Assembly (NCBI GenBank): GCA_002269645.1
Contig: NIVC01000598.1
Coordinates: forward strand, 62,001 to 126,000
Direction of reading: 5' to 3'
Origin: Macrostomum lignano
Taxonomy: Eukaryota
DNA: 64,000 bases
Under the pieces are notes generated by a model. That model was given only the letters and a program-made list of their open reading frames with translations, was not told where the DNA came from and ran no database searches. Position numbers and translations under genes: made by a program. This document shows positions 2,556 to 63,839 of the stretch, in pieces (position 1 is the stretch's first letter; the number at the start of each line of letters is the position of its first letter).

Positions 2556-2969
2556 GTAGATCTCTGCGAAATGCTTCTCAATTCTATGCTTGAATTGAAC
2601 TAATCGTTACTAAATAAGTAACTTTTGCTTTTGATACTACTCAAGTCCATCAGTAGTATCTAAATACAATTTAGAAACACAGCGGACTATTGGATAAGTG
2701 TGTCGCCTATAACAGGGACAGCGCTGGCCAACCACCGCGGCCGGCCTCAACTGGATAATAGATCGAGGCTCGGCACTTTGCCAGCGGGTCAGCTCTCGGC
2801 TCTCCATACTTCGACAAATTCTGGAATAGTAAGACAATAAAGGTAAGTCGGCGGAGTTGAGTTTTTAGCTATTGCTCTGCTACCTGCTAGTTAAGAGCTG
2901 GATTTTAGAAAGTGAGTTTTCCTTTGTATCTGGGAGGAGTAAGTGATGATAGGGAATACCAGAGAGAGG

Positions 2970-3445
2970 GAGAGGAACGAGAGGCAGAGGAACGAGAGGC
3001 AGAGAAACGAGAGGCAGAGGAACGAGAGGCAGAGAAACGAGAGGCAGAGGAACGAGAGGCAGAGGAACGAGAGGCAGAGGAACGGGAGGCAGAGGAACGA
3101 GAGGCAGAGGAACGAGAGGCAGAGGAAAGAGAGGCAGAGGAACGAGAGGCAGAGGAACGAGAGGCAGAGGAACGAGAGGCAGAGGAACGAGAGGCAGAGG
3201 AACGAGAGGCAGAGGAACGAGAGGCAGAGGAACGAGAGGCAGAGGAACGAGAGGCAGAGGAACGAGAGGCAGAGGAACGAGAGGCAGAGGAACGAGAGGC
3301 AGAGGAACGAGAGGCAGAGGAACGAGAGGCAGAGGAACGAGAGGCAGAGGAACGAGAGGCAGAGGAACGAGAGGCAGAGGAACGAGAGGCAGAGGAACGA
3401 GAGGCAGAGGAACAGAGGAGACAGAGAGGCAGAGGAACGAGAGAG
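2970..3445. repeat. 15-bp purine-rich minisatellite (gaggcagaggaacga), ~31 units
   Basis: Tandem units read directly; gives the EAEER, RQRNE and SASRS ORFs, with no ATG start in the EAEER frame. Confidence 0.93.
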
Positions 3446-3884
3446 AGAGTAAAGAGAGGCACTTGAAGGAGAAGCAGAGAAAGTAAAGGCAAGTTGCATG
3501 AGGACAACACTTCGCTAACGTAAAATGAGCGATGGACGAACAGGCTTGCTGGAGGGGAGTTTATTTTCACATAGATGTACTTTTGTATTGTATTCGGCAC
3601 CGAAAACAAAAAAACAAGAGCACAATTGGATTACGGAAGCTAAAGACTTGCAGCAACGCAGATTTGAGCTGCTATGAAAGCCTCTAAAAGAAGCTTGTTC
3701 CACAAGACAAAGTGAATTTCCATATTTGGCCAGGCGTGCCGCTGCTAATGCGGGGCGCCAATTAGCAGAAAATCTGCGCCGAGTTCTTAGCGGATTAGCA
3801 GCTTTTGTAGTTCGAATAGAAGCAATAAATTTCGCTGCTTTCACCTGGGAATTGACCCATTTTAGCACCAAGCCGGATCAGCCA

Positions 3885-4364: not shown

Positions 4365-4962
4365 TGAGGCAGTGTGGTGCTAACAGAAACACTGGCTGAT
4401 GCAGGGTGGCGCTAACAGAAACACTGGCTGAGGCAGGGTGGCGCTAACAGAAACACTGGCTGAGGCAGGGTGGCACCAAGTTGAGGCAGTGTGGCGCCAA
4501 GCTGAGGCAGTGTGGCTCCAAGCTGAGGCAGTGTGGCGCCAAGCTGAGGCAGTGTGGCGCCAAGTTGAGGCAGTGTGGCACCAAGTTGAGGCAGTGTGGC
4601 GCCAAGCTGAGGCAGTGTGGCGCCAAGCTGAGGCAGTGTGGCACCAAGCTGAGGCAGTGTCGCGCCAAGTTGAGGCAGTGTGGCGCCAAGCTGAGGCAGT
4701 ATGGCGCCAAGCTGAGGCAGTGTGGCGCCAAGCTGAGGCAGTGTGGCGCCAAGTTGAGGCAGTGTGGCGCCAAGCTGAGGCAGTGTGGCGCCAAGTTGAG
4801 GCAGTGTGGCGCCAAGCTGAGGCAGTGTGGCGCCAAGTTGAGGCAGTGTGGCGCCAAGCTGAGGCAGTGTGGCGCCAAGCTGAGGCAGTGTGGCGCCAAG
4901 CTGAGGCAGTGTGGCACCAAGCTGAGGCAGTGTGGCACCAAGCTGAGGCAGTGTGGCGCCAA
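4365..4962. repeat. 21-bp minisatellite (gccaagctgaggcagtgtggc) preceded by related longer units
   Basis: Tandem units read directly. Confidence 0.95.
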
Positions 4963-5471: not shown

Positions 5472-6512
5472 AGAAATCTGACCGCTATGGGGAATCTAAC
5501 CGCTAAGGAGGGTCATCTGACCGCTAAGGAGGGGAATCTGACCCTAAGGAAAATCTGACCGCTAAGGAGGGGAATTTGACCCTAAGGAAAATCTGACCGC
5601 TAAGGAGGGGAATCTGACCCTAAGGAAAATCTGACTGCTAAGGAGGGGAATCTGACCCTAAGGAAAATCTGACCGCTAAGGAGGGGAATTTGACCTCTAA
5701 GGAAGGGAATCTATCCGCTAAGGAGGGGAATCTAACCGCTAAGAAGGGGAATCTGACCGATAAGGAGGGGAATCTGACCGCTAAGGAGGGGAATCTGACC
5801 GCTAAGGAGGGGAATTTGACCGCTAAGGAGGGGAATCTAACCGCTAAGGAGGGGAATCTAACTGGTATGTAGGGGAATCTAACCGCTAAGGAGGGAAATC
5901 TGACCGCTAAGGAGGGGAATCTGACCGCTAAGGAGGGGAATCTGATCGCTAAGGAGGGGAATTTGACCGCTAAGGAGGGGAATCTAACCGCTAAGGAGGG
6001 GAATCTAACTGGTATGTAGGGGAATCTAACCGCTAAGGAGGGAAATCTGACCGCTAAGGAGGGGAATCTGACCGCTAAGGAGGGGAATCTGACCGCTAAG
6101 GAGGGGAATCTGACCGCTAAGGAGGGGAATCTAACCGCTAAGGAGGGGAATCTGACCGCTAAGGAGGGGAATCAAACCGCTAAGAAGGGGAATCTGACCG
6201 CTATGGAGGGGAATCCAACTGGTATGTAGGGGAATCTAACCGCTAAGGAGGGGAATCTGACCGCTATGGAGGGGAATCTAACCGCTAAGGATGGGAATCT
6301 AACTGGTATGTAGGGGAATCTAACCGCTAAGGAGGGGAATCTAACCGCTAAGGAGGGGAATCTGACCGCTAAGGAGGGGAATCTAACTGGTATGTAGGGG
6401 AATCTAACCGCTAAGGTGGGGAATCTAACCGCTAAGGAGGGAATCTAACCGCTAAGGAGGGAATCTAACCGCTAAGGTGGGGAATCTAACTGCTACGGGG
6501 AATCTAACCGCT
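5472..6512. repeat. 21-bp minisatellite (gaatctgaccgctaaggaggg), ~49 units
   Basis: Tandem units with variants (aactggtatgtaggg). Confidence 0.95.
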
Positions 6513-8982
6513 ATGGAGGAGAACCTGATTTCTAAGGAAGTAAATAAACAAGCTCGGAGATCTGAGAGGCCCGGTAAAAAAGATGAACATGAAGGTTTTT
6601 TGCGACTTCTTTTCGTCCTTTTTCCTTTTCTGTGCGACTCGCTTCACCGCTAGGGTCGCGCCTTTTTCGTGTCGCCTCCCACGTTCCCCGTCCACCCATC
6701 TTCATATTAGGAAATCAAATGGCTTGTTGAGTTGGTATACGCTGGGGGCAGTTTGAATCTGCATGACATCAACAGCAATTTTGCTATACGCGATCGTAGT
6801 AATTAGTACATTCTCTACATGAAAAAATCGGTGCGAAGTGGTAAAAAAAGTGTCCACCGTGTGGCGCCAAAGGCATGGCCTCAGTTCACATAAGTATATA
6901 TTCTGAGATTCTCGTAGCCTCAAAACTGAAAATCCGGTCACACCCCGGATTTCACTTAATTTTCTAACCTTAAATGATGGGATCGGAGAAGTTTGGAAAT
7001 CGCTGTGCAAGCAAAGGGGATGCGCGATGGCTATTGGCAAATATCCCGCGGTCACGATGAAAGAACTGCATGCGCAAACAATTCGCCCTTGTGCAAACAA
7101 TGAAAATGCATGCACTGCTGCACTGCACTGCTCATCACGCTAATTGCTTGTGCGTGAAACATGATTCAATGATTAAGCATTCAATGATGGCTATAATCAT
7201 AGCTGCATGGTAGAACACGAATGAGATCGATATTGGTAACATTTAGTTTTTAAAAAATCGTCTGTTGGTTTTATAGTGTCTGGTAAGTACATTTCATCTG
7301 CATACGACGACTGAGTAAAATGTACAACCGTTTCCCTGGGGTCTGCCAAAGCGAAATCGGCCATGCAGTGCCGAATTCAACTATGGCTAGACGCGAGCAA
7401 CATGCAGCCATGGAAGCGGCCATGCAAGCGAATCCAAATTAATTTACATCCGGTTTCTAATGGGGCTACGAGCTATACGATTTGGTTCGAATTAAAGCCT
7501 TTGGCTGTTCGTCGAATTTCTTTGTGATGTAGTTCTGCAATTTCTGCTTCACAGCATAGGCTAATATGCAGTCCTATTTAATATTACGATCGCAGGTATC
7601 GCTCCTTTGTGTCTCGATAGCACTGTTAAAGCCAAAGTACAACGAGCTGAAAGCGCTCCGATTTTAAAGCATGTATGTATGTATACATGATTGCGCAGCT
7701 GTCAGAATCAAACGCCGTGGAGAAGACATCTACGGCCAAGCATTGACCATCCGTGATTTATCTTAAAACCATGCTCGTCCAGTCTTAAATTGGCAACAGA
7801 TTTACTGCATGCAAAATGCTTGTTTGCTTTATAAAAAGTAAAACGCATATTTACGAATAATTAAAATTTCAAGAAATTTAGGCTAAATTTGAATAAGTAG
7901 CCACTATTTAACCTAGTTATAACAACAATACTTCGATAATTGCAACACTTAAAAGGACTAAGTTATGGTCGTAGTAAATAAAGAATTAAGATGCTAATAG
8001 TTTGACTAATCGAGTTAATAAACCTTCCTGAATTTTTCTAACTATTGTTTACACAAGCAACAATTAAATCAACGAGGATATCTTCTTAAAATATTTGAAA
8101 TCAGTACGTCCCTAGTCTACTAAAATAATCATACATTTACTAATTTATTAACATATAAATAATACGGTAATATTTTATATTAAAAAATATATATTAGAAA
8201 ATTCTTTGCTCTAAAACTACACTTACAGTCTTTTTTCAACCCTCATATTAAACAATGCTGTATTTTGCTTCAGCTTCGCACCACCTTCACTGGACTGGCT
8301 TCCCAAAGAAATGTATTGATCAAGCAATCTGTCCAAACTAGACTATACTTTTATTCTTTACAACAGTTATTAAAGTTGAACTATTTTAATGCAGGGCAAC
8401 CTAGCAAATCACATGTAAACTATTTAGATTGTTCAACTATATATGAACTGAATGAAATTTTATGTGTATAATATGCATGCAATAATACAAAAAAACACAA
8501 TAAAAATGTTAATTTTGCAATGCTATTCCGTCATTTATATTCTAGAATGAAATTATTGGTTGTTTTAGGTTTAATCAATATTTATAATATTCATTGATTT
8601 AACTACCTGGACAGTAACTACAGATATAGGTTCCTTAAATACAAGAATCATAGCAATAAGTATTAATAGTAGTAGCAATATAAAATCAACTATTTCAGTT
8701 ATAATTTCAAATTTCACTTTGGAAATGACAGCTACTGCTTTTTCTGAAATTTTCTCTTGCTAATGGTCGAAATAATTTATTACCAATAATTTTTCTATTT
8801 GCCATCAAATTCATATATTTTCATGCTCAATTTTAATGCTTGTCAGTGCTGTAATTTTGATTTTATTTCTCTAAGTTTGAAACTAATCCAGATTATTTTT
8901 ACCGTATCATGAAACAAAATAAATTTAATTAATATCATCTCAACAGAATCGATACAGCATGTGATTTCACTTTTTACCCCAA

Positions 8983-11874: not shown

Positions 11875-12612
11875 TTCGGCTATGAGCATCTGGAGCTGGC
11901 ATGCAGTTGCTAGGCTATACGCTGGGTTATGAACTGGGCTATGAGCATCTGACACTGGCAATAGCTGGCCTATGAGCTGGGTTCTGAGCTGGGATATGAG
12001 CTGGGCTATGAGCACCTGACACAGGCAGTAGCTGGGCTATGAGCTGGGAAATGATTATCTGACACTGGCAGTAGGTGGGCTATGAGTTGGGCTATGAGCT
12101 GGGCTATGAGCATCTGGCACTGGCATTAGCTGGGTTATGGGCATCTGACACAGGCAGTAGCAGACCTATGAGCTGGGCTATGAGCATCTGGCACTGGCAT
12201 TAGCTGGGTTATGGGCATCTGACACAGGCAGTAGCAGACCTATGAGCTGGGCTATGAGCATCTGGCACCGGCATTAGCTGGGTTATGGGCATCTGACACA
12301 GGCAGTAGCAGACCTATGAGCTGGGCTATGAGCATCTGACACAGGCAGTAGCTGGGCTATGAGCTGGGCTATGAGCATCTGTCACAGGCAGTATCAGACG
12401 TATGAGCTGGTCTATGAGCATCTGGCACTGGCAAAGCTGGGTTATGGGCATCTGACACAGGCAGTAGCAGGCCTATGAGCTTTGCTATGAGCATCTGACA
12501 CAGGCAGTAGCAGGCCTATGAGCTTTGCTATGGGCATCTGACACAGGCAGTAGCAGGCCTATGAGCTTTGATATGAGGCATCTGTCACAGGCAGTAGCAG
12601 GCCTATGAGCAT
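11875..12612. repeat. Compound minisatellite built from gagctgggctat and gagcatctgacacaggcagta modules
   Basis: Tandem modules read directly. Confidence 0.9.
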
Positions 12613-12956
12613 ACTATTCAATTATTCAATCTGTTTATCAGCAAGCAGAAGTCTCGAAGTCTCGTGAACAGCAAACACACGATGTGTAGTTGAATCGAAA
12701 GTGCAGCAAAATGAACAAATTTCTGCTTGGCACACCTCAAGTCATGCCAGTTGGCAATAGAAATGCTTCCCAAACGGCCATGCTCTTTGACCCCATTTCT
12801 GGGAAATCAGCTCAATTCCAACAGAGACAATTTTGACGGCTAGGCCCCATTTCTGGGAACCAACATCCAAAGGTGTGAAGTGTTTCCCAGAAACACATGC
12901 ATGGCTCACATTAATTGTGAAGCCTCTATGGAAAGCTGGGAGACAAATGCACTGAA

Positions 12957-13104
12957 TGCGCTCCCATTAATGTGAGTCCGGGCTCCTTTAGGGTTCGCGG
13001 CGTAGCAGCGCATTCGTGCGGGTCACGTGGACAAAACCTGACGAAAAGTTGCGCAGAAAGAAACATTATCGCTGCGACACACCTAGGCGGGTGGCCTATA
13101 AATA
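12957..13104 (+). promoter_or_regulatory. Pol II promoter of the Cys-rich gene: MRE-core match TGCGCTC (12957-12963), E-box GTCACGTG (13022-13029), GC-box-like 13086-13094, TATAAATA (13097-13104)
   Basis: Motifs read directly; TATA lies ~100 nt upstream of an ATG in good context (acaATGg). The MRE core consensus TGCRCNC is established knowledge; function here is inferred. Confidence 0.6.
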
Positions 13105-13200
13105 ACCCCCCAGCTGGGCTGGCGGAGAAGCCCGAAGCGATAGGAAAAAGAGGATTCTCCGATCTGAGCTCTGCGACCCTTATTGTTTAACCTTTTAACA

Positions 13201-14493
13201 ATGGACAAGCCAAGTTGCCCCACATGCAAGTGCGAGAACTGCAAATGCGAGAACTGCAAGTGTGAGAACTGCAAGTGCGAAAACTGCAAGTGCAAGAACT
13301 GCAAGTGCGAGAACTGCAAATGCGAGAACTGCAAGTGCGAGAACTGCAAGTGCGAGAACTGCAAGTGCGAGAACTGCAAGTGCAAAGACTGCAAATGCGA
13401 GAACTGCAAGTGCGAGAACTGCAAGTGTAAAGACTGCAAGTGCAAAGACTGCAAGTGCGAGAACTGCAAGTGTAAAGACTGCAAGTGTAAAGATTGCAAG
13501 TGCGAGAACTGCAAGTGCAAAGACTGCAAATGCGAGAACTGCAAGTGCGAGAACTGCAAGTGCAAAGACTGCAAGTGCGAGAACTGCAAGTGCAAAGACT
13601 GCAAGTGTAAAGATTGCAAGTGCGAGAACTGCAAGTGCAAAGACTGCAAATGCGAGAACTGCAAGTGCGAGAACTGCAAGTGCAAAGACTGCAAGTGCGA
13701 GAACTGCAAGTGCAAAGACTGCAAGTGTAAAGACTGCAAATGCGAGAACTGCAAATGCGAGAACTGCAAATGCGAGAACTGCAAATGCGAGAACTGCAAG
13801 TGCAAAGACTGCAAATGCGAGAACTGCAAATGCAAGAACTGCAAATGCGAGAACTGCAAGTGCGAGAACTGCAAGTGCAAAGACTGCAAATGCGAGAACT
13901 GCAAATGCGAGAACTGCAAGTGCGAGAACTGCAAGTGCGAGAACTGCAAGTGCAAAGACTGCAAGTGCAAAGACTGCAAATGCGAGAACTGCAAGTACAA
14001 AGACTGCAAGTGCAAAGACTGCAAATGCGAGAACTGCAAGTACAAAGACTGCAAGTACAAAGACTGCAAGTGCAAAGACTGCAAATGCGAGAACTGCAAG
14101 TACAAAGACTGCAAGTACAAAGACTGCAAGTGCAAAGACTGCAAGTGCAAAGACTGCAAGTGCAAAGACTGCAAGTGCAAAGACTGCAAGTGCAAAGACT
14201 GCAAGTGCGAGAACTGCAAGTGCAAAGACTGCAAGTGCAAAGACTGCAAGTGCAAAGACTGCAAATGCGAGAACTGCAAATGCGAGAACTGAAAATGCGA
14301 GAACTGCAAGTGCAAAGACTGCAAATGCGAGAACTGCAAGTGTAAAGACTGCAAGTGCAAAGACTGCAAATGCGAGAACTGCAAGTGTAAAGACTGCAAG
14401 TGCAAAGACTGCAAGTGCAAAGACTGCAAATGCGAGAACTGCAAGTGCGAGAACTGCAAGTGCGAGAATTGCAACAGCGCGTCCTGCAACTAG
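13201..14493 (+). CDS. Giant tandem-repeat metallothionein-like Cys-rich protein: MDKPSCPT-(CKC[EN/KD])x83-CNSASCN*. An in-frame TGA at 14290-14292 gives 363 aa, or 430 aa if read through or corrected.
   Basis: 83 x 15-bp units 13225-14469 with no indels; unique in-frame Cys-containing N- and C-caps; synonymous variants aag/aaa, tgc/tgt, gag/gaa, gac/gat, aac/aat; no signal peptide; TATA upstream; AATAAA 14621-14626. Confidence 0.75.
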
Positions 14494-16191
14494 CAGCCGC
14501 AGTTTTCCTGCAGTTTGAGCTGAGGAAGTTGCCGGAACATTGAGGCATAACTAGCGTAACTAAAGTTTGATAAATGTGTATCCCAACCCTAAAGCAATTT
14601 TTTTATCGTGAATTGTTTTAAATAAATAACTGCATGCTATGAAATCTGTTTGCATGAATCACAAACTTGATTGCTCAATTTTATTGATTTTTCGCGCGAG
14701 GTTTATGGCACTCATTCTAATAGAACTCTCGAGATTTGTAATTAATTTTGCACGAACAATAAACGCGTATGATTAAAGCCAGATGTAAAAGAAAACAAGA
14801 TTCTTTCATTTTATGATCAGTAATTGAAGAATTTTCGGTAATGTTAACTATGATCGAAAGTTTCATTGGAAGAGCAGACCAAGCAGAATAGTGGTTGTTT
14901 TGTACGCTCGATCGTAGCTATACAAAAATTGAGTTTAGTACTGTAGATTAACCTCGACCTTATACTTTCGTCCAGTTCGCATTAGATTCTACGACAACGC
15001 ATTCAATGAGTGGCATAGATCAAGTAGTATGAAAAATATGAAATCTGCATGTATGTTCTTCGGCCTTATTAGCTTATAGTGTAAGCTTACATAAGCTTGT
15101 AAGTTCGGCCTTATATTATAAACGCGAAACGAAAATCAGTGCATATAAATATGCTTTATATACAGTCATCAAAACTCAGTTCAGGGGCGTAAATTTACTT
15201 TAAAAGGCTGGAAATTTAGGATTCTACATATAGGATATCCAACTAAAAGTTACCGTTTCAGGACGCAACACTCGGCGATGCAGTATGCAACGAAGCAACG
15301 AAGCACCGATGCAACGAAGATGCAGTAGTCATAGGAAATGAAATCGTTTGTCCACAAACTATTGTGTATTTTGTGCCCGTGTTTGTGTCATTGTTACAGT
15401 GGTGTCTGCTGTAAAACAAATGACAAAGTGAGTTCATAAATGGTTCATGATGTAGCTTAAATTGAGTATACTCAACGTAGAGAACGACCATTAAGTTATT
15501 CGTTCAGTCATTTACTTAAGACATCAAAAAAGAAGTTCTTTACACCCATAAAAGCTGTTTATTTTAATTCCTTTTCTTCTGCTAGTTCATCTAGTTCTAG
15601 TTTCATAATTGCTTTTTCGTTATTTTGTAGGTTATCGTGTTTATTAAAAATAAAAGCATTATAACAAAATATTTAATCATTCAGAGAGAAAATAATCACT
15701 TATGAAAGATCCGAAAAACTTCATTTATCTGCTTACGGTACTTGTTTAAACCGTTATTATTCGATATTCAAACTGGAAAAGAAGCGTACGAGCTATATAG
15801 CAAGAAAGCAACAATGGGGAAGCTCTCTCTCGCGCCATAATTATCACAGAACCTGCACTAATATGATTCTGGCTATGCTACTCATGCTAGAGCATATATA
15901 GTTTGCTTCTACTCTAGGCCCTTAATTTATCTGTCTAATGTTCAGGACTTAATTCTATTTTATTAGTCCCATGACTCGCATCCATGATCCATCTCATTCT
16001 AGGCTAGGGCATAATATCTTAATCTCCATGATATAATTTTCTTTTGAGTTGTTTTTTTCTGGCAGAAATGGGCCTAGCACTATAGCAGCCTAAGATAAAG
16101 GAAACCAAAATGTAAACATTAATTTAGTCATCAATTGACATTAGTCTATAGGCAAGCCAGGCCACAAACAATGTGGTGTGGCTGGTGCACA

Positions 16192-19919: not shown

Positions 19920-20664
19920 TGCTCTCATGATTCATAATTTCGTATATTTACATAAATAAAGAAAATCAAAAACTGTACAAGGCAATAGACGAATGGGTTC
20001 AGTCCGGTCAATAGTTGTACATTAAGAGACAATAATAAATTAAATTATTAGGCCATCAAAAAAAACCCAAAAAACACAGAGCAAACATTTTTGTTAAAAC
20101 AAACTCTTCAGTCATATCGCTAGTGTAAATTAGACAACTTATTTATGTATGAAAGTAGCAAGTTTCTTGTTCAATGGCTAAAAACTCACACTAGTAGAAC
20201 AAAAATACTGCATTGAAAAATAAGTATGGTAGAATGTAGTCCTTCAAAAACAATTTAAAATTTAGCTCTTGGCTGTGTAATACACAATTATTGCATGTTT
20301 TTATAATTTTATACTATGGGATGAGCGTTTTTGTTTTCTACATGGTTTCTGGCAACAGAGTGTTCTTGGTAGTTTCTGTGGAAAATGTATCAAAAAAGCA
20401 ACTGAAAAGTATAGACAAAAATGATCTTATAATTAATTGGCTTGGCGCCAAAAGTATCATTTTGTTTTCAGTACTAGGCAGAAATATAAGCATCTACACA
20501 GCACCCGAAGCACTTTTCAATTTTTCATGGCAATAATTATGATTGGGTTGCAGAACAACTGTGTTTGAATGACACAGTTTGAATGATGAAGTAAAATAAC
20601 GCTTAAGTTAATACAAGACATATTGCGCATCCCTTTTCATGCTCGATTGCGCAAGCCCTCAGCC

Positions 20665-21093
20665 ATGTCTTACATGCTGCCCCACCTCACCAATGGCTGG
20701 CAGGTGGACCAGGCCATTCTGTCCGAGGAGGATCGGCTCGTGATTATTCGGTTCGGACACGACTGGGATCCCGCCTGTATGGTCATGGACGAGACTCTGT
20801 TTAAAGTGGCCGAGAAGGTTAAAAACTTTGCCGTCATTTACCTTGTTGACATTCAGAAGGTGCCAAACTTCAACAAGATGTACGAACTGTACGACCCCTG
20901 CACGGTGATGTTCTTCTACAGAAACAAGCACATCATGATCGACCTGGGCACCGGAAATAATAACAAAATCAACTGGGCTGTCGAGGACACTGGCGAGTTT
21001 ATCGACATAGTCGAGACAGTGTTCAGGGGCGCCCGCAAAGGCCGGGGTCTGGTGGTGTCGCCCAAGGATTATTCTACCAAATATCGATACTAA
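20665..21093 (+). CDS. TXNL4A: Dim1 / U5 snRNP 15 kDa thioredoxin-like protein, intronless, 142 aa
   Basis: MSYMLPHLTNGWQVDQAILSEEDRLVIIRFGHDWDP...SPKDYSTKYRY is the hallmark Dim1 sequence; cag directly before ccATG; AATAAA 21210-21215. Confidence 0.98.
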   Translation: MSYMLPHLTNGWQVDQAILSEEDRLVIIRFGHDWDPACMVMDETLFKVAEKVKNFAVIYLVDIQKVPNFNKMYELYDPCTVMFFYRNKHIMIDLGTGNNNKINWAVEDTGEFIDIVETVFRGARKGRGLVVSPKDYSTKYRY

Positions 21094-21424: not shown

Positions 21425-21775
21425 ATGGACGCCAAGGACGGCAAGGAGGAGCTGCAGTCGGCGCAGGTTCACCGGATCCGCATCACGCTGACGTCAAAGA
21501 ATGTCTGCAGCTTGGAGAAGGTGTGCGCCGACCTGATCAAGGGCGCCAAAGACAAGAACCTGCCAGTGAAGGGGCCGGTGCGGATGCCGACGAAGGTGCT
21601 GAGCCTCACGACCCGCAAGACTCCGTGCGGTGAGGGCTCGAAGACGTGGGACCGGTACCGCCTGCGGCTGCACAAGCGGCTCATCGACCTGCAGTCGCCC
21701 GCCGAGACCGTCAAGCAGATCACCAGCATCAGCATCGAGCCGGAGGTCGAGGTCGAGGTCACGGTGGCCAAGTGA
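21425..21775 (+). CDS. RPS20: 40S ribosomal protein S20 (uS10), intronless, somewhat divergent
   Basis: [54 protein letters not shown]; AATAAA 21853-21858. Confidence 0.97.
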
Positions 21776-22157
21776 AGAGGCGATGTGTGTGTTCCAGGTT
21801 TTGCGCTGACTGCTTCCGCTGGTCTGCTTGTGTCCGCGGCCTACGGGCTGTGAATAAATCAGAGGGCTGAGTCAGTTTCGACTTGCTTGGAGTTGATTTC
21901 TCGTTGCCTTTCTTTTTTCTCTAATGTCTGCGCAAATACTTAGTTATAGTTTTTTAAGCTTTTAGTGTGTAGGCTTTTATTTTAGTAGTCTACTACTCTG
22001 TCAGTAGTAATATGTGTAGCAGAAATAAAATTTGCATCCGCATCGATTCTAGGTATTGCAGGATGTGAAACGCGACCCAGGCGGCACCAATAGCAGCCAG
22101 AGGCGCAAGCAACAGAAACAGCAACAGAAGCAGCAGCAGCAACAGCAAGAAGTCGCT

Positions 22158-24534
22158 ATGCGCGAATGCAAGGTCTTCGACGTCGTCGATGAGTTGAACA
22201 ACGGACTCGAAGACCTGCCGGTGGTCTGCTTAAAGTCCCTGCCGCAGTCGCACCCGTTCTCAGAGCGCCGGGTGCCGTTGGGCCAGGAGGCGGTGAAGAT
22301 CGGCCGGTCCGTGGCCAAGTCCAAGCCCGCCATCGACAATGCCATATTCGACTGCAAGGTGCTCAGCCGGAACCACGCCTTGCTGTGGTACGAGTCCGGC
22401 CAGTTCTGGCTGAAGGACACAAAAAGCAGCAATGGAACTTACGTTAACAATCAGCGGCTTGGCAAAGGCAACGAGGAGAGCCCGCCTCGCCGACTGCTTA
22501 GCGGCGACATCGTCCAGTTCGGCGTTGAAGTGGTGGAAAATTCCAAGAAGGTCACCCACGGCTGCGTCATAGCCTCCGTGTTTCTGTACCACGCAGACTG
22601 CAGCGAGGACAAGCAGCCAGACTCCGCTTCGTTGAGCTCCGCTGCCTCCGCGTCGGTGCCGCCCGGTTCCGAAGCAGACGCCGAGGCGGTGGCAGCCGCG
22701 GCAGCAGCAGCGGCGGCCGCCAACACGGTGAGCCAGGAGCAGGTGCACCAGCTCAGCCAGTACCTGCAAGAGGCGCTGCACAGGGAGCGTCTGCTCACCG
22801 TTAAGCTGGACAAATTCCGCGAACTTCTTGACTCCATAGCTGGCGTTAGCGCGGGCGCCTGGACAACCGTGCTGGATCAGGAGCAGCTGGCGCAGCGGCT
22901 TGAGCTACTTGAAGCCCAGGTAGCCGCTGCCGGTGTCAACTCTGACAGCGATGCTGACGACCGCGACGGAGCCGCTGCTGGCGACTCGCTGTCGGCTGCG
23001 GTTCGTGCCGGTGCCGCTGCCGAGGAGACGCTGAAGCGGCGCCTACAAACGGCGCTAGTCGAGTGCGGCGCCGCCGTCCATAGAGCCGGCGAGCTTGAGC
23101 GGGCCTGGCGCGACAGCCAAGACGAGTGCCAGCACCTGCGGGCGGAGCGCGACCGCACCGAGGACCGGCTGCGCGAGCTCGGCGAGCGGCTGGCGCAGGA
23201 GTTAGATGAGCTGAGCTCCCAGCTGGCCAAAGAGATGGAGCGCAATTCCTCTCTTAAGTCACGAATTAAAGAACTGGGCGAGGCTCTGAACGACGGTCAG
23301 CGGTACCGGGCGGAGCGGGAGCCGCAGTCGGGGCCGAGTGGAGCCGTCGAACGAGCGGATGCCGAAGCGCAAACTGTGGCAGACTCGGGTGCCCCAGCGC
23401 CGCAAACAGGGCCGCAGGCGGACTTGTTGAAGGCGCAACTGCAGGTCGGTTCTAAACTCAGATTATTGTTAATAATTCATGTGACAGTTAATAGACAGGC
23501 GATCTGCCGAAAGTCACACCCATGAGGGCCAACGCCAATGCACAAAATGTGCATGACTGTCAGGGCCGCTGTACACCCACCGTCTGTGAGCGTGTATGTG
23601 AGTGCGTGTCTTTGTACAGTGTTGGCGCGCTTGTACTCGTATGTGCTTAGGAGTAAGCTGGTTGGTCCTCATTTTGAGCGTAAATCGCACAAGCCCTCGC
23701 CTCTGAATGAAACTGTGAATGTTAATTCCATGTTTTGACCCATGGCATAGATATTGAACAGTTTTAGTGCAGTGTACAAGTTCTCAGTACCTATTTACTC
23801 AATATCACCTTTCTTAATGATGCAGTGATTATCAGTATGTGAGCAGCTAGTGTAACACCGCAAATACATTTAACCCTCAGGCGTGCAAGACTCAGCTGCG
23901 CGACCAACAGGCGTCTCTGGACGCCTCCTCGGCCAAAGTCGACGACCTCCACACCCGGCTGGAGTCGGCTCTGTCCTGCCTCAACCAGCTGGAGACTCGA
24001 ATGCTCGAGCTGGAGGCCCAGAAGCAGCTCCGCCAGCAGCGGCCGCGCCAGCAGCTGCCTCGGCCGCCATCGCCCGGCTCGAATGGCCAGCAGAACGCTG
24101 CCTGGCTGCTCGACCTCCTTCGCTGCCTTCGAGCCGATCCGATCGCCGTAGAGAAAGTAGAGCGCCAGCTGCTGCAGCCGCTGCTAAAGTCGTCGCCGAC
24201 GCTACAGGCCGCTTTGCAGGAAGTCGACGCCGAAACTGCGCACCTTCGAGCCAACCTGGACTCCGAGGCCGACAGGCGGCGCCAGCTTCTGGCCGACTGC
24301 GACAGCTTAGCGGCGCGGATTACCGACGCCGAGCTGACTGCCCTCGCCGGCCGTGACGAGCGCGCTAGCCTAGAGCAGCGGCGTCGCGACCTCCAGGCCG
24401 CCTGCGACCGCCAGCTGGCCGACTGCCGCGCCGAGGCCCGGGCCGCCGCCAACCGCAGCCGCCTGCTGCTCGCCGCCGGGGTCCTGCCGTTGCTGCTAGC
24501 CCTGCTGGCCGGCGTTTTCTGGATCGCCTCGTAG
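22158..24534 (+). CDS. SLMAP: SLMAP orthologue (FHA domain, coiled coils, C-terminal tail anchor); exons 22158-23444 and 23881-24534
   Basis: FHA segment SHPFSERRV..KIGRSVA...NAIFDCKVLSRNHALLW...DTKSSNGTYVNNQRL...GDIVQFGVEVVEN; phase-0 GT-AG intron 23445-23880; terminal TM LLLAAGVLPLLLALLAGVFWIAS*. Confidence 0.92.
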
Positions 24535-25699: not shown

Positions 25700-25874
<175 letters not shown>

Positions 25875-26320
25875 AGCTGCAGTCGTGAGAGGCGCGCGCG
25901 CATCTTTGATTAAGTAGAGGTTTTTTTCCTCTCTCTTTTTTGTTTTACCGTTTTACTCTCCTTTGTTTCGTTCAGCGCTGCCGGTCTTTCTTCTGTCGCG
26001 ACCCCGACCCCTTCTTCCCTTGCCTACCCTGCGGCTTGTGTACCCTGCCGTTTTTGGACAAGTTTTTTTTTCATATTTTTCTACGTGACATAATTGCTTT
26101 AAATTTAGTTCTCACCTTCGATGTTGTATTGTATTGATTGCGATTTTTTTATTTAAAGCACAAGTAAAGATGACCGAAAGAATGCGCTCTGTTGCTTGGC
26201 AGTTATCGTTATTATTACTGAGCTGTGCGAATTCGGGGTTTGTCAATTTTTAACAGGTGCAGAACTTTGCCATACGGATCCGGCACCTGGGGAATCAGGA
26301 TAAAGGCCAGCATAATTAGG

Positions 26321-26936
26321 AATCAGGATTGGGATCAGGATATTTGGGAATCAGGATTGGGATCAGGATATTTGGGGACCGGGATTGGGATCAGGAGACT
26401 TGGGGATCGGGATTAAGATCAGGATATTTGGGAATCGGGATTGGGATCAGGATATTTGGGAATCGGGATTGGGATATTTGGGGACCGGGATTGGGATCAG
26501 GATATTTGGGAATCGGGATTGGGATCAGGATATTTGGGGACCGGGATTGGGATCAGGATATTTGGGAATCGGGATTGGGATCAGGATATTTGGGGACCGG
26601 GATTGGGATCAGGATATTTGGGAATCGGGATTGGGATCAGGATACTTGGGGATCGGGATTGATATCAGGATACTTGGGGATCGAGATTGATATCAGGATA
26701 CTTGGGAATCGGGATTAATATCAGGATACTTGGGAATCACTGTTGGGATCAGGATATTTGGGAATCGGGATTGGGATCAGAGTATTTACGAATCGGGATT
26801 GGGATCAGGATACTTGGGGATCGGGATTGATATCAGGATACTTGGGGATCGGGATTGATATCAGGATACTTGGGGATCGGGATTGATATCAGGATACTTG
26901 GGAATCACTGTTGGCATCAGGATATTTGGGAATCGG
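26321..26936. repeat. ~28-bp minisatellite (gggattgggatcaggatatttggggacc)
   Basis: Tandem units read directly. Confidence 0.93.
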
Positions 26937-27152: not shown

Positions 27153-28406
27153 ATGGCAGGCAGGCTTCCAGCGGTTGTCATTGACAACGGCACCGGCTAC
27201 TCCAAGATGGGCTACGCTGGCAACAGCGAGCCTCAGTTCATTATGCCCAGCTGCATCGGCATCAAGGAGGCTGCCAAAGTTGGCACCAAGGAGTCCAGGC
27301 GCCTCGGCACCGGCCTGGATGATTTGAATTTCTACATCGGCGACGAGGCGCTGACGGTGGCCAGCAGCTACGCCACCAAGTGGCCGATCCGGCACGGCCA
27401 GGTGGACGACTGGGACCTGATGGAGCGCTTCTACGAGCAGGCCATCTTCAAGTACCTGCGCGCCGAGCCAGAAGATCACTACTTCCTGCTGACTGAGCCG
27501 CCATTGAACACCCCGGAGAACCGGGAGTACACCGCCGAGATCATGTTCGAGACGTTCAACGTCCCTGGACTGTACATCGCTGTGCAGGCGGTGCTGGCCC
27601 TGGCCGCCAGCTGGACCACCAGGCCGGAGGGCGAGCGAACCCTCACTGGGGTTGTCATCGACTCCGGCGACGGCGTCACCCACGTCATCCCGGTGGCCGA
27701 CGGCTACGTCATTGGCAGCTGCATCCAGCATATTCCCATTGCTGGCCGCGACATAACCTTCTTCATTCAGCAGCTGCTGCGCGAGCGCGAGGTGGGCATC
27801 CCGCCAGACATGAGCATGGACACCGCCAAGGCCATCAAGGAGCGCTACTGCTACGTGTGCCCGGACATCGCCAAGGAGTTCAACAAGTACGACGCGGAGA
27901 GCTCCAAGTGGATTAAGACGTACACGAGCATTAATCCCATCAACAATGTCCCGTTCACTGTGGATGTCGGCTACGAGCGATTCCTGGCCCCCGAGATCTT
28001 CTTCCACCCGGAGTTCGCCAACCCGGACTTCCAGACTCCGCTGTCCGAAGCCGTGGACAACGTGATCCAGGCCTGCCCCATCGACAACCGGCGCGGCCTG
28101 TACAAGAACATCGTGCTGAGCGGCGGCTCCAGCATGTTCAAAGACCTCGGCAAACGGCTGCAGCGCGACATCAAGCGAGCATCGGACAGCCGCCTGAAGG
28201 CTGTGGAGGCGTTCAGCGGCCAGAAGCCGACGCCAATCGAAGTGAACGTTTTCTCCCACGCCAAGCAGCGCTACGCTGTCTGGTTCGGCGGCTCCCTGGT
28301 GGCCTCCACCAACGAGTTCTACTCGGTGTCGCACACCAAGGAGCAGTACCTGGAGTACGGAGCCAGCATCTGCCGGCACAACCCGGTGTTCGGCGCCATG
28401 ACCTGA
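27153..28406 (+). CDS. ACTR3: Actin-related protein 3 (Arp2/3 complex), intronless
   Basis: [30 protein letters not shown]...[11 protein letters not shown]...[45 protein letters not shown]...[12 protein letters not shown]; cagcag directly before ccATG. Confidence 0.98.
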
Positions 28407-29100: not shown

Positions 29101-31390
29101 TTCACATTCTAGACTCCCTTTCTAGGAATGTACCTTAAGCTTCTCATTCTAGACTCCCTTTTTAGGAATGTACCTTATGCTTCTCATTCTAGACTCCCTT
29201 TCTAGGAATGTACCTTATGCTTCTCATTCTAGACTCCCTTTCTAGGAATGTACCTTAAGCTTCTCATTCTAGACTCCCTTTTTAGGAATGTACCTTATGC
29301 TTCTCATTCTAGACTCCCTTTCTAGGAATGTACCTTAAGCTTCTCATTCTAGACTCCCTTTCTAGGAATGTACCTTAAGCTTCTCATTCTAGACTCCCTT
29401 TCTAGGAATGTACCTTAAGCTTCTCATTCTAGACTCCCTTTTTAGGAATGTATCTTTTAGATTCCCATTCTAGACTGCCTTTCTAGGAATGTACCTTAAG
29501 CTTCTCATTCTAGACTCCCTTTCTAGGAATGTACCTTAAGCTTCTCATTCTAGACTCCCTTTTTAGGAATGTACCTTATGCTTCTCATTCTAGACTCCCT
29601 TTCTAGGAATGTACCTTAAGCTTCTCATTCTAGACTCCCTTTTTAGGAATGTACCTTATGCTTCTCATTCTAGACTCCCTTTCTAGGAATGTACCTTAAG
29701 CTTCTCATTCCAGACTCCCTTTCTAGGAATGTACCTTAAGCTTCTCATTCTAGACTCCCTTTCTAGGAATGTACCTTAAGCTTCTCATTCTAGACTCCCT
29801 TTTTAGGAATGTATCTTTTAGATTCCCATTCTAGACTGCCTTTCTAGGAATTTACCTTAAGCTTCTCATTCTAGACTCCCTTTCTAGGAATTTACCTTAA
29901 GCTTCTCATTCTAGACTCCCTTTCTAGGAATGTACCTTAAGCTTCTCATTCTAGACTCCCTTTTTAGGAATGTATCTTTTAGATTCCCATTCTAGACTGC
30001 CTTTCTAGGAATTTACCTTAAGCTTCTCATTCTAGACTCCCTTTCTAGGAATTTACCTTAAGCTTCTCATTCTAGACTCCCTTTCTAGGAATTTACCTTA
30101 AGCTTCTCATTCTAGACTCCCTTTCTAGGAATGTACCTTAAGCTTCTCATTCTAGACTCCCTTTCTAGGAATGTACCTTAAGCTTCTCATTCTAGACTCC
30201 CTTTCTAGGAATTTACCTTAAGCTTCTCATTCTAGACTCCCTTTCTAGGAATGTACCTTAAGCTTCTCATTCTAGACTCCCTTTCTAGGAATTTACCTTA
30301 AGCTTCTCATTCTAGACTCCCTTTCTAGGAATTTACCTTAAGCTTCTCATTCTAGACTCCCTTTCTAGGAATGTACCTTAAGCTTCTCATTCTAGACTCC
30401 CTTTCTAGGAATGTACCTTAAGCTTCTCATTCTAGACTCCCTTTCTAGGAATTTACCTTAAGCTTCTCATTCTAGACTCCCTTTCTAGGAATTTACCTTA
30501 AGCTTCTCATTCTAGACTCCCTTTCTAGGAATGTACCTTAAGCTTCTCATTCTAGACTCCCTTTCTAGGAATTTACCTTAAGCTTCTCATTCTAGACTCC
30601 CTTTCTAGGAATGTACCTTAAGCTTCTCATTCTAGACTCCCTTTCTAGGAATGTACCTTAAGCTTCTCATTCTAGACTCCCTTTCTAGGAATTTACCTTA
30701 AGCTTCTCATTCTAGACTCCCTTTCTAGGAATTTACCTTAAGCTTCTCATTCTAGACTCCCTTTCTAGGAATGTACCTTAAGCTTCTCATTCTAGACTCC
30801 CTTTCTAGGAATGTACCTTAAGCTTCTCATTCTAGACTCCCTTTCTAGGAATGTACCTTAAGCTTCTCATTCTAGACTCCCTTTCTAGGAATTTACCTTA
30901 AGCTTCTCATTCTAGACTCCCTTTCTAGGAATTTACCTTAAGCTTCTCATTCTAGACTCCCTTTCTAGGAATGTACCTTAAGCTTCTCATTCTAGACTCC
31001 CTTTCTAGGAATTTACCTTAAGCTTCTCATTCTAGACTCCCTTTCTAGGAATGTACCTTAAGCTTCTCATTCTAGACTCCCTTTCTAGGAATGTACCTTA
31101 AGCTTCTCATTCTAGACTCCCTTTCTAGGAATGTACCTTAAGCTTCTCATTCTAGACTCCCTTTTTAGGAATGTGTACCTTTAGACTCCCATTCCAGACT
31201 CCCTTTCTAGGAATGTACCTTTAGATTCCCTTTCTAAACTCCCTTTCTAGGAATGTACCCTTAGATTCCCATTCTAGACTCCCTTTCTAGAAATGTACCC
31301 TTAGATTCCCATTCTAAACTCCATTTCTAGGAATGTACCTTTAGACTCCCATTCCAGACTCCCTTTCTAGGAATGTACCTTTAGATTCCC
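29101..31390. repeat. 40-bp satellite array (ttctcattctagactccctttctaggaatgtaccttaagc), ~57 highly homogeneous units
   Basis: Tandem units read directly; variants tatgc/taagc and atgta/attta. Confidence 0.97.
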
Positions 31391-31980: not shown

Positions 31981-32046
31981 TGTCTGTTTCTGTCTGTCTG
32001 TCTGTCTGCCTGTCCGTCTGTCTGTCTGTCTGTCTGTCTGCCTGCC

Positions 32047-32081
<35 letters not shown>

Positions 32082-32082
32082 G

Positions 32083-32115
<33 letters not shown>

Positions 32116-32201
32116 GTCTGTCTGTTTCTGTCTGCCTGTCTGTCTGTCTGTCTGTCTGTCGGTCTGTCTATCCGTCCGTCCGTCTGTCTGTCTGTCTGTC
32201 C

Positions 32202-32249
<48 letters not shown>

Positions 32250-32265
32250 GGCTGTCTGTCTGTCT
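31981..32265. repeat. (TCTG)n microsatellite
   Basis: Read directly. Confidence 0.97.
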
Positions 32266-32488: not shown

Positions 32489-35008
32489 ATGGTCAAGGCG
32501 GACAAGGCCAAGACTAAATACGCTGTTGGTAAGCCTTTGCTGGTCTGTGCAATCTTAGCAACTCAGAAATTAATTTGGTACCCAAGCACAGCTAAATTCC
32601 CACCCTCTCCCCCATCGCAGCGTACTTCTCGTCGCAGATCAACGCGGATGAAAACAAAGACCTGCAGATCTGTGTTCACCGCGACGCGGACAACACGGAG
32701 AAGAGCTACGTGAGAATGCTTTTAAATTGTCTTTTTTCCGCATCTTCCACTTTTGGAGTCTTCAGAATCACAACAGCCTCCATTATTTATAGATTCTCAA
32801 AACTGATACCAGTCGCAATGTCTCAGACCTTCGTTACCCAAACTGCCCTCTGACAGTGCAAATTCATCAGTATTCGCTAACCGGCCCCCTCTTCATCAAT
32901 TCTTCAGTCGTGCCGCACCTCTGGCGGCCTGCAGTGGACAGGACGTGACGACTCCCGTCTGACCTTCGCCACCCGCCTGGTGCTGCTGGCCCGCGACCGC
33001 GGCACCGGCCACGTCTCCATCCTGTCGCCCTCGGTTGACGCCGTCCGCTTCCTGCCGCAGTGCGTCGTTGACGCTCCCGAGGCCGCCGGCGACGATGCCG
33101 CAGCCAGCGGCCGGAAGCGCACGGCGCAGCAGGCCGCCACCGCTATGTACGAGGAGTTCGGCAGCACGGCAAAGAAGCGGCGCATCGCCGAGTCCAAGCG
33201 GCTTAATGCCACCGTGACCTCGCGCGACCTCAAAGCCGCCGTGTCGGCTGCCAACCGCCGGCTGGACGCCGCTGCCACTGCTTCGCCGGGCGGTGCCGCT
33301 GGAGCAACAACAGCGGCCGGCGATGTCGGCGGAGATCCGACAGCCTCGCTGCTGCCGTCCCGCAATCCCTCGGCCACTCAGCCGGCCGGAATCTATGGCC
33401 CGGACGCCGTCTGTCCGGCCAAGCTGCGGGCCGCCCTGCTGCCCGAGGCGGAGCGCCTGGCCGCGTCCGGCCCCGCCGACTGGGCCGCCTGGCGCTCGGA
33501 GGCCGCCTACCCGGACTCGCTGGTGCTGCAGCGGCTGCCCCAGGCGCCAACGGAGCCGTCGGCCAGGCTGAGCCACTGCGTCCGGCTGGCCATGCTGGCC
33601 TGCATGCGCAAGTTCTACGGCTTCTCCTACAAGATGGTGAATCGGAAGGGGCCGCTGCCGGACCTGCCAGAGGAGGTTGGCAGCTACCTACTGGCGAACT
33701 ACACTCTGCTGGTGAGTCCAAAGTACACAGCTACTGTTGCTCATTTTTCCAATAAAACACAAATTCATATTGCCTACTGTCAGTAGGCTGTAGGTCTTTA
33801 ATAATAATGTAAAACGGTCTAAAGATTAATAACAGTATAAACTACGAAATTCACTGTAAGGTGGCCGGTGTCGTGTTGCGGAGATATGCATGCAGTGCAG
33901 AGGCAATGCGAGCTAGCTTCATCAATATTTGCAATTTATTTTCACAGCAGGGTGAACTGCAGCTTAGAGCTGCTGCCCAATCACAGCAGGGTGAGTTGCA
34001 GCTCAGAGCTGGTACCCAATCACAGCAGGGTGAACTGCAGCCCAGAGCTGCTGCCCAATCACAGCAGGGTGAACTGCAGCCCAGAGCTGCTGCCCAATCA
34101 CAGCAGGGTGAGCTGCAGCTCAGAGCTGGCACCCAATCACAGCAGGGTGAACTGCAGCTCAGAGCTGGCACCCAATCACAGCAGGGTGAGCTGCAGCTCA
34201 GAGCTGCTGCCCAATCACAGCAGGGTGAACTGCAGCCCAGAGCTGCTGCCCAATCACAGCAGGGTGAACTGCAGCCCAGAGCTGCTGCCCAATCACAGCA
34301 GGGTGAGCTGCAGCTCAGAGCTGGCACCCAATCACAGCAGGGTGGACTGCAGCTCAGAGCTGGCACCCAATCACAGCAGGGTGAACTGCAGCTCAGAGCT
34401 GGCACCCAATCACAGCAGGGTTAACTGCAGCTCAGAGCTGCTGCCCAATCACAGCAGGGTGAACTGCAGCCCAGAACTGCAGCCCAGAACTACAGCCCAG
34501 AACTGCAGCCTAATCACAGCAGGGTGAACTGCAGCTCAGAGCTGCTGCCCAATCACAGCAGGGTGAACTGCAGCTCAGTCTGATTGACAGCCTAGAGTTA
34601 TCAGCTGCGTACTAACCGCGGCCAACTGTGCCAAGTCTGCTCCAAGAAGATAATCCCTTCGTATTATCATTGATTTCCCCGGTCAATATCGCTTGTCGAA
34701 CTATTTTTCGAAGTCCTTGTTTGTAACCGAGTAGCCGGTCTCCATTCCAGATGACCACCGGCTCGGGACATCAGCAGCGGGCGCTGCCGAAGATCATGAA
34801 GGACAAGCAGCTGATGCACATGATCATCCTCTGCCTTCAGCTGGACGGCTTCGTCACCGAGACCCCCGGCCTGATGTCCGAGTTTCGACTGGCCTCCGAC
34901 AAGCTGCACCGCCTGCTGAAGTCCATCGGCTGCGAGCTGGCCACGGAAAAATTGAGCAGCGGCCAGCAGGGCAAAGTGGCCCGGCTGAAGGCTCCGATCT
35001 CTAAATAG
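32489..35008 (+). CDS. POLR1E: RNA polymerase I subunit RPA49/PAF53; exons 32489-32528, 32621-32709, 32908-33711, 34751-35008
   Basis: Four GT-AG exons join in frame. YEEFGSTAKKRRIAESKRLN, LLPSRNPSATQPAGIY and KDKQLMHMIILCLQLDGF...LKSIGC resemble A49-family motifs (recalled, not searched). Confidence 0.75.
33942..34577. repeat. 39-bp intronic minisatellite (cacagcagggtgaactgcagctcagagctgctgcccaat), ~16 units
   Basis: Tandem units inside POLR1E intron 3. Confidence 0.95.
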
Positions 35009-45100: not shown

Positions 45101-45235
45101 GGGGCGCCGACACTGCCAACGGAGCGGACTTTGTTCGCTCCCAGGCCCTGCGGCGCGCCATCTGACGCGCCCTGCTCTAACTGTGACTGTGCATGCGGGG
45201 TCGCGTATTTTGTTGCTGTTGTTGTTGTTGTTGTA
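42180..45235 (+). mobile_element. RTE-type non-LTR retrotransposon (APE endonuclease + RT), frameshifted, (GTT)n tail
   Basis: EN motifs LGTMNCRTL, GVGVLI, LGDLNA, SDHRLL; RT motifs QNGFRP, FVDFRKAFDSV, GVLQGDTLAP, YADDL, FTYLGG; several frameshifts; (TTG)n at ~45210-45232. Confidence 0.92.
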
Positions 45236-45600
45236 CAACGCCGAGACCTGCTGGACCCTGACGGACACCTTGTTGGAGAGGCAACTGGAGGCTGAGCATG
45301 TGGCCATGCTGCGTGCGGCGTTCGGAGTGAGCAGCAGTCCAGGCAGCAATTAAGACCAATATGCCACGCTCTACACAAGGGCGCGCCTGATGCGGCACGC
45401 CAGTCGAAGTCGTCGCAGGTCAGAATTGGTCGGTGGCCCGCTGCCCTGAGACGCTGCACGAAGTGCTGCGCTCAAACTGCAGGGACCGCGCAGCGAGGCC
45501 AAGGGCGAACGGCGAGATACCCTGACAGGCTTTTGCTGACGCTGATGCCCCCGGACCAAGCTGGCCGGATATGGGGTGTGACCCATATTATTAAGCAATA
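45230..45600 (+). mobile_element. 3' fragment of a related RTE-type element
   Basis: LLYNAETCWTLTDTLLERQLEAEHVAMLRAAFG parallels LLYNVETWTLTATLERQLDSANSGLLRAAFR. Confidence 0.75.
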
Positions 45601-63204: not shown

Positions 63205-63740
63205 CAAGCATCCCCCAGATAGCAAGCATCCTCCAGATAGCAAGCATTCTCCCAGATAGCAAGCATTTCCCAGATAGCAAGCATCCCCAAGATAGCAAGC
63301 ATCCTCCAGATAGCAAGCATCCCCCAGATAGCAAGCATCCCCCAGATAGCAAGCATCCCCCAGATAGCAAACATCCCCCAGATAGCAAGCATTCCCCAGA
63401 TAGCAAGCATTCCGCAGATAGCAAGCATCCCCCAGATAGCAAGCATCCCCAAGATAGCAAGCATCCCTCAGATAGCAAGCATACCCCAAGATAGCAAGCA
63501 TCCCTCAGATAGCAAGCATACCCCAGATAGCAAGCATCCCCCAGATAGCAAGCATCACTCAGATAGCAAGCATCCCTCAGATAGCAAGCATCCCCCAGAT
63601 AGCAAGCATCCCCCAGATAGCAAGCATTCCCCAGATAGCAAGCATTCCCCAGATAGCAAGCATCCCCCAGAAAGCAAGCATCCTCCAAGTAGCAAGCATC
63701 CCCAAGATAGATAGCATCCCCAAATAGCAACCATCCACCA
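63205..63740. repeat. 18-bp minisatellite (agatagcaagcatccccc), ~30 units
   Basis: Read directly. Confidence 0.95.
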
Positions 63741-63839
63741 GACAATAAGTAGCTAGAGCGACAATTTCCTTAGCTTTATAGTGGCTCCTTTAAATTGGCA
63801 TGGCGCTTTATACCTTTACATTTGAAATTGGATATCTTG

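Follow-up and report, generated by a model that had tools for sequence, protein, structure and literature searches.

The question raised by the locus considered here is whether a long tandem repeat with a suggestive translation is a gene and, if so, what kind of protein it makes. The repeat belongs to the flatworm Macrostomum lignano and lies in a stretch of 64,000 nucleotides (positions 62,001 to 126,000 of the forward strand of contig NIVC01000598.1, assembly GCA_002269645.1), which is called the window below and to which all coordinates refer unless another block is named. On the plus strand of the window, a start codon is followed in frame by 83 units of 15 bp encoding pentapeptides of the Cys-Lys-Cys-x-x type, which a sequence-only reading had taken for a giant metallothionein-like gene. 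A real gene is probably present at this locus. Its nature is held with less confidence: judged from the DNA, it may be a young, lineage-specific, intronless metallothionein-like gene of M. lignano that has grown by minisatellite expansion, a tentative identification that we place somewhat short of probable.

The array occupies positions 13225 to 14469 (83 x 15 bp, consensus TGCAAGTGCGAGAAC) and, in the reading frame set by the ATG, encodes (C-K-C-E-N / C-K-C-K-D)n, as delimited by Tandem Repeats Finder (TRF), the unit list and the variant statistics. TRF returns a single array at 13225-14474 with a period of 15, 83.3 copies and 0% indels. The in-register listing from 13225 gives 83 units (42 CKCEN, 33 CKCKD, 5 CKYKD, 2 CKCKN and 1 *KCEN), in agreement with the earlier count of 83 indel-free units. 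The start codon opens the eight non-repeat codons MDKPSCPT (13201-13224, plus strand) and stands in the good context that had been described for it (aacaATGg, with A at -3 and G at +4).

The frame was earlier considered to be open for 430 codons. This is refuted by an in-frame TGA at 14290-14292 in unit 72 (TGA AAA TGC GAG AAC), where TGC is changed to TGA; the open reading frame (ORF) from the ATG is therefore only 363 aa long as assembled (13201-14292). The proposed figure of about 163 Cys holds for the read-through translation, but the actual ORF contains 138. Reading this TGA as selenocysteine was rejected, as no selenocysteine insertion sequence (SECIS) or other Rfam family was matched at E <= 1 in 12600-15400. 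The end of the array, a terminal unit of decayed appearance followed by the last codons (TGCAACAGCGCGTCC TGC AAC TAG, CNSASCN*), lies at 14470-14493, in frame and 3' of the TGA. Its TAG (14491-14493) is followed 128 nt later, close to the earlier estimate of about 130 nt, by AATAAA at 14621-14626 on the plus strand, a candidate poly(A) signal situated 329 nt past the TGA.

Several features of the locus are gene-like. A candidate TATA box, TATAAATA, can be read from the sequence at 13097-13104 on the plus strand, 104 bp 5' of the ATG. TATAAA is rare in GC-rich DNA of this kind, with 6 plus-strand sites in the 44 kb of the window that have GC >= 0.45 (about 0.014 per 100 bp). The leader of roughly 70 nt contains no ATG, and the start codon is in the Cys frame, eight codons 5' of the array. 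The codons of the consensus unit are the five that neighbouring genes prefer (TGC 10:1, AAG 36:9, GAG 42:4, AAC 21:7 and GAC 33:7); the GC content at third codon positions (GC3) of these genes is 0.85. That a rare canonical TATA box at a distance suited to a promoter, an ATG-less leader, an in-frame ATG of good context eight codons from the array and 5/5 preferred codons should coincide by chance is improbable (about 1e-4 for each array), an estimate that is post hoc, the gene-like points having been chosen after the fact.

The predicted product resembles metallothioneins in composition, as had been suggested. The 363-aa ORF includes 138 Cys (38%), 106 Lys (about 29%), 39 Asn, 37 Glu, 33 Asp and 5 Tyr. 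All Cys are in C-K-C-x-x-C spacing, that is, the very high Cys content in C-X-C and C-X-X-C arrangements that is typical of metallothioneins. Phe, Trp and His are absent, and the five Tyr are the sole aromatic residues. The N-terminus MDKPSCPT has no hydrophobic stretch and no secretion signal, also as in metallothioneins, which agrees with the earlier statement that a signal peptide is missing and aromatics are scarce. With 363 aa, or about 40 kDa by our estimate, the ORF exceeds the classical metallothionein size of less than 10 kDa, although longer modular proteins, such as OdiMT2 with 399 aa, are counted among the metallothioneins.

The closest known pattern is that of ciliates. CKCXXCKC is the diagnostic elementary motif of the Tetrahymena subfamily 7b copper thioneins, in which Lys stands next to Cys and CC clusters are essentially absent (PMC1808422, Table 1; PMC4862169). 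Every pair of adjacent units in the flatworm array forms CKCxxCKC, and CC does not occur anywhere in it, so that the reiterated motif is identical to that of the ciliate proteins, such as MTT2/MTT4. The ciliate proteins are about 100 aa long with irregular X2-5 spacers, whereas the flatworm array consists of 71-83 strictly periodic five-residue units. Induction by Cu, which in subfamily 7b is expected to be stronger than that by Cd, has been shown for the Tetrahymena genes and would be at most a putative property of the flatworm locus.

Long modular metallothioneins are also known in other groups, as pointed out before. OdiMT2 of Oikopleura dioica has 399 aa with 123 Cys (31%) and 3-7 repeat units among populations (PMC8283569). 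It shares with Tremella TmMT, the multi-domain snail metallothioneins and the flatworm array a very long, tandemly repeated organization and a repeat number that varies by population or copy. The modules are longer in these proteins: the OdiMT2-type units are pairs of autonomous 12-Cys domains of about 65 aa with measured metal binding, in contrast to the minisatellite-like flatworm unit of 5 aa (15 bp), for which binding is putative.

If the locus is a metallothionein-like gene, its coding region would have been inflated by unequal-exchange expansion of one 15-bp unit. We infer transcription, translation, metal binding and metal preference of the product, which would be a cytosolic polythiolate, MDKPSCPT-(C-K-C-[E/K]-[N/D])n, of about 40 kDa, with neither a signal peptide nor a hydrophobic core. 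The C-K-C-x-x-C-K-C pattern would chelate soft metal ions in thiolate clusters as in metallothioneins, and the protein would be disordered without metal and fold around the metal-thiolate clusters. The geometry would be nearest to that of Cu(I)-thioneins; a preference for Cu(I) is pointed to by the CxC motifs with adjacent Lys, which are typical of those proteins. Metal capacity may scale with the number of units. About 3 Cys bind one divalent ion in mammalian metallothionein, and close to 1 Cys binds one Cu(I) in fungal copper metallothioneins; by analogy, 138 Cys could hold roughly 45-50 divalent ions or of the order of 100 Cu(I). Length would not be fixed in such a protein, as suggested by arrays of 83 and 71 units that are cut by stops to 363 and 235 aa. 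Since every few units would be self-sufficient, a distal stop or the gain or loss of units would alter capacity while function is kept, and selection on each single unit would be weak.

The shorter array belongs to a duplicated locus on NIVC01000704.1 (block L004), which holds the same 15-bp unit, an ATG at 1888 and the in-frame Cys frame. The 24 nt encoding MDKPSCPT (L004 1888-1911) and those of CNSASCN-TAG (L004 2977-3000) are identical to the window, and the TATA box and AATAAA are conserved, as is the whole flank. The L004 array has 71 units in place of 83, in reshuffled order, and contains variants of its own (CKSEN, FKCEN, CKCEK and CKCDN). Its frame is closed by an in-frame TGA at 2593-2595, in the second Cys codon of unit 46, which leaves 235 aa. 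L004 and the window share 98.2% identity in the 5' flank, where 561 bp contain 6 indel events; the values are 95.9% for the 3' untranslated region and 97.3% further downstream. Reshuffled arrays of 71 and 83 units between flanks 96-98% identical bear out the minisatellite-style expansion that had been proposed. A third duplicated block is found on NIVC01004553.1 (L005), and the order of the DIM1/TXNL4A, FHA/STRIPAK-type and ARP3 genes is kept across all three blocks. A nested 31/43/74-bp repeat (AGCTGGGCTATGAGCATCTGACACAGGCAGT...) is present directly 5' of the promoter-like region in both copies (window 11934-12610; L004 643-1291).

A number of results weigh against a metallothionein gene, beginning with the lack of both a homologue in databases and a significant Pfam metallothionein match. 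For the 430-aa read-through, no homologue was found at E <= 10 among 5.8 billion clusters in a word-indexed search (13 word-sharing candidates). An exhaustive phmmer run against 1.84 billion representatives yielded 1403 matches, and the 12 inspected, including those of highest identity, were low-complexity xKxEN pentapeptide sequences without the CKC pattern. No ciliate metallothionein or CKC protein was recovered from either set. Among Pfam metallothionein families the best match was PF12749 at E = 2.5; the nearest Pfam match of any kind was PF25296 'Decapeptide' (42.8 bits against a cut-off of 45), driven by the xKxEN periodicity. No exact record was found for the 363-aa ORF or for a guessed 3'-end fragment. 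The literature search recovered neither the string CKCENCKC nor a metallothionein described for Macrostomum. These absences, together with Protein Data Bank (PDB) matches that were solely marginal, are in keeping with the earlier view that the protein was previously undescribed. As evidence against a gene the absence of homologues is weak, because the databases are blind to short metallothionein relatives (30-60 aa) and a 15-bp array is beyond what short-read assemblies can retain. As no homology to ciliate metallothioneins is detectable, the resemblance to Tetrahymena subfamily 7b would be convergent.

The annotation also speaks against a gene, with no called gene between 10644 and 20643, that is, at the repeat locus, in the transcript-based Mlig_3_7 annotation. 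Local annotation is incomplete, however, as an intact S10-like ORF at 21425-21775 is also uncalled. Of metal-response element cores, a single one lies upstream (TGCGCTC at 12957), and no enrichment was found; the whole window holds fewer cores than its shuffles. The gene-like layout of TATA box, ATG and poly(A) signal that had been proposed is supported, all three being present on the correct strand. AATAAA occurs 46 times on the plus strand of the window and is common in AT-rich downstream DNA. Each of the copies, as assembled, has a premature in-frame TGA, not at the same unit, and the last 11 units of the window array and the CNSASCN cap are positioned 3' of the one in the window. That the gene parts are conserved from one copy to the other is uninformative by itself, since the non-coding flanks reach 96-98% identity as well. 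The 3' cap had been described as unique; it matches the repeat unit at 10/15 positions, and 13209-13224 matches it at 8/15 with a 1-nt insertion by our reading. Both caps resemble repeat units that have decayed at the ends of the array, and they therefore provide no independent evidence of a gene.

Several of these points favour the strongest of the alternatives, an ordinary non-coding minisatellite with fortuitous flanks (ATG, TATA-like octamer and AATAAA) and no protein, which we regard as unlikely, though a serious possibility. Of M. lignano DNA, 15% consists of simple and tandem repeats, and repetitive sequence accounts for over half of the genome (PMC5730564). With this load and about 20 arrays in the window, some 'interesting' frame in one of the arrays is unsurprising. 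The window yields 62 TRF rows; in about half of its arrays the period is a multiple of 3, and many arrays lack indels irrespective of period. Examples are found at 688-1351, 2229-2551, 2964-3479, 4459-4962, 5475-6528, 26308-26936, 29101-31388, 33942-34578 and 63205-63742, and the largest array consists of a 40-bp unit x57 (2.3 kb, 95% matches). Freedom from indels is not specific to the 15-bp array: according to TRF, 40-bp x57, 23-bp x14 and 31-bp x7.6 arrays of the window also have 0% indels, with periods that are not multiples of 3. An open frame is not specific either. Frames +1, -0 and -1 are stop-free in both arrays and frame -2 in the window array, while the proposed frame has one stop per array. 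The flatworm array is similar to non-coding M. lignano minisatellites in being young and indel-free, in its higher-order structure, in copy number and unit order that differ between loci and in its decayed edges. It differs from them by the TATA box, the good-context in-frame ATG, the poly(A) signal and the 5/5 preferred codons. The low probability that the TATA box, the ATG-less leader, the in-frame ATG and the preferred codons came together by chance, post hoc as the estimate is, argues against a purely non-coding origin, as do the gaps in the local annotation.

The variants within the units give a mixed answer. It had been claimed that they fall on third codon positions of the Cys frame. 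All five third positions of the unit are indeed variable, compared with 3/10 of the other positions (Fisher p = 0.019), and the sole other frame with an identical wobble set is an antisense frame, which has no ATG. Counting shows the implied synonymous bias to be weak. The window array has 8 distinct single-base variants, of which 4 are synonymous and 3 nonsynonymous, and 1 is a stop. In the antisense frame with shared wobble positions the score is 4/4, and comparable ratios are reached in some frame of the non-coding control arrays. About 16 events are inferred for the two copies together, comprising 2 stops, 6 synonymous changes and about 8 nonsynonymous ones. At 38%, the synonymous changes exceed a neutral 11-22% (p = 0.005-0.12, depending on the assumed transition bias); for transitions alone, 6/10 are synonymous against an expected 1/3 (p = 0.077). 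The synonymous excess is weak and not significant under realistic transition bias. Stops account for 2/6 of the transversion events and 2 of the roughly 16 events overall, which is about the neutral rate. In the Cys codons (6 nt), 5 events are damaging (Y, S, F and 2 stops), and in the spacer codons (9 nt) about 3-5 are. Cys, the residue that a metallothionein needs most, is thus under no visible extra constraint, a point that also speaks for a non-coding array.

Another alternative accepts expression but not metal buffering. The product could be a disulfide-hardened intracellular Cys/Lys-rich structural protein, for instance of the stylet or sperm, or a beta-solenoid of the pentapeptide type; this is rather improbable. 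Flatworms have intracellular hard structures, and the missing signal peptide fits them. A literature search on stylet and cysteine found nothing relevant. AlphaFold2 (AF2) predicted a beta-solenoid in all 5 models, with predicted scores of 87-91 in the local distance difference test (pLDDT) and a predicted template modelling score (pTM) of 0.79, and the sole matches among PDB sequences were marginal ones to pentapeptide-repeat proteins (E ~0.013). Pentapeptide-repeat proteins (PF00805; Qnr/MfpA/McbG and the SV2 luminal domain) do share the five-residue periodicity and the AF2 beta-solenoid with the flatworm array. However, the A(D/N)LXX consensus of PF00805 with its central Leu/Phe is absent from the array, where the central position would be Cys, and the match to PF00805 was below threshold (E = 0.26; 11.3 bits against a cut-off of 20.2). 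AF2 is known to give confident but unrealistic beta-solenoids for perfect repeats (PMC11795689), no significant fold match to the model was found (best E = 0.14, TM <= 0.36), and an out-of-frame control sequence reached a pLDDT of 85 in one AF2 model. For these reasons the predicted solenoid was discounted.

Still less probable, to the point of being a marginal explanation, is a decaying pseudogene: a formerly functional metallothionein-like repeat gene that became redundant after recent genome duplication and is drifting in all copies. M. lignano is a neopolyploid, and 180 Mb of its assembly lie in duplicated blocks at least 95% identical (PMC5730564; see also PMC10733133). An independent premature TGA in each copy and the C>S, C>F and C>Y replacements would suit such decay. 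On the other hand, the protein is modular, both stops are located in its distal 15-35%, and truncation would still leave 90-138 Cys. In neither copy is the promoter, the ATG or the poly(A) signal damaged. The stops themselves are single-base calls inside a 1.2-kb array of 15-mers, which is the least reliable part of the Mlig_3_7 assembly, as this was built from PacBio continuous long reads (CLR) with Canu and polished by Pilon with short reads.

The minus strand carries an ATG ORF antisense through the array (14548-13187, (SSRTC/SLCTC)n, 453 aa), open in the window, which was judged less likely because of its non-preferred codons, its lack of promoter and poly(A) features and one stop in L004.

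The surroundings of the locus can be summarized as follows. DIM1/TXNL4A (20644-21093) and ARP3 (27153-28406) are single-exon ORFs, with an FHA/STRIPAK-type gene (22056-23525) between them. The uncalled S10-like ORF, also rpS20-like, is an intact plus-strand frame of 116 aa; L004 and L005 have two called S10 genes each, which suggests that copy number differs among the blocks and that the annotation has gaps. Within the span of the FHA-domain gene, L004 contains a 52-bp x11 array (14778-15350, 98% matches) with no TRF counterpart in the equivalent part of the window. ARP3 is flanked by (TGTC)n microsatellites at 25700-25874 and 31981-32265 (44 and 72 copies), and the L004 counterpart is (CTGT)134. 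Retroelement remains with reverse-transcriptase/RNase H ORFs are present at 43009-45295 (plus strand), 51767-52957 (minus) and 59916-61589 (minus). An ankyrin-repeat ORF (46156-47499, minus) and a major facilitator superfamily (MFS) transporter ORF (49905-51167, plus) lie among the retroelement ORFs.

Metallothioneins are polyphyletic, and the origin of new ones is an open question. Should the ORF turn out not to be expressed, the locus would serve as a caution: in repeat-rich genomes, an array free of stops and indels is no evidence of a gene, however suggestive its translation. If it is translated, the product could be the most Cys-rich and finest-modular metallothionein-like protein known (138-163 Cys, five-residue module), an 'expressed minisatellite' resized by unequal exchange between homeologous copies, lineage-specific and convergent on the ciliate CKCXXCKC; this wider claim is a doubtful one, and we advance it as a possibility. 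A direct test is feasible, since M. lignano lends itself to transgenesis and already serves in Cu/Cd toxicology (PMC11641670). A real ORF would provide a candidate flatworm metallothionein-like gene, none being described for Macrostomum in the literature search, with a copy-number series of 235, 363 and about 430 aa in one neopolyploid genome. It would mean that a metal-binding protein can be generated from a five-residue seed and resized by plain minisatellite dynamics.

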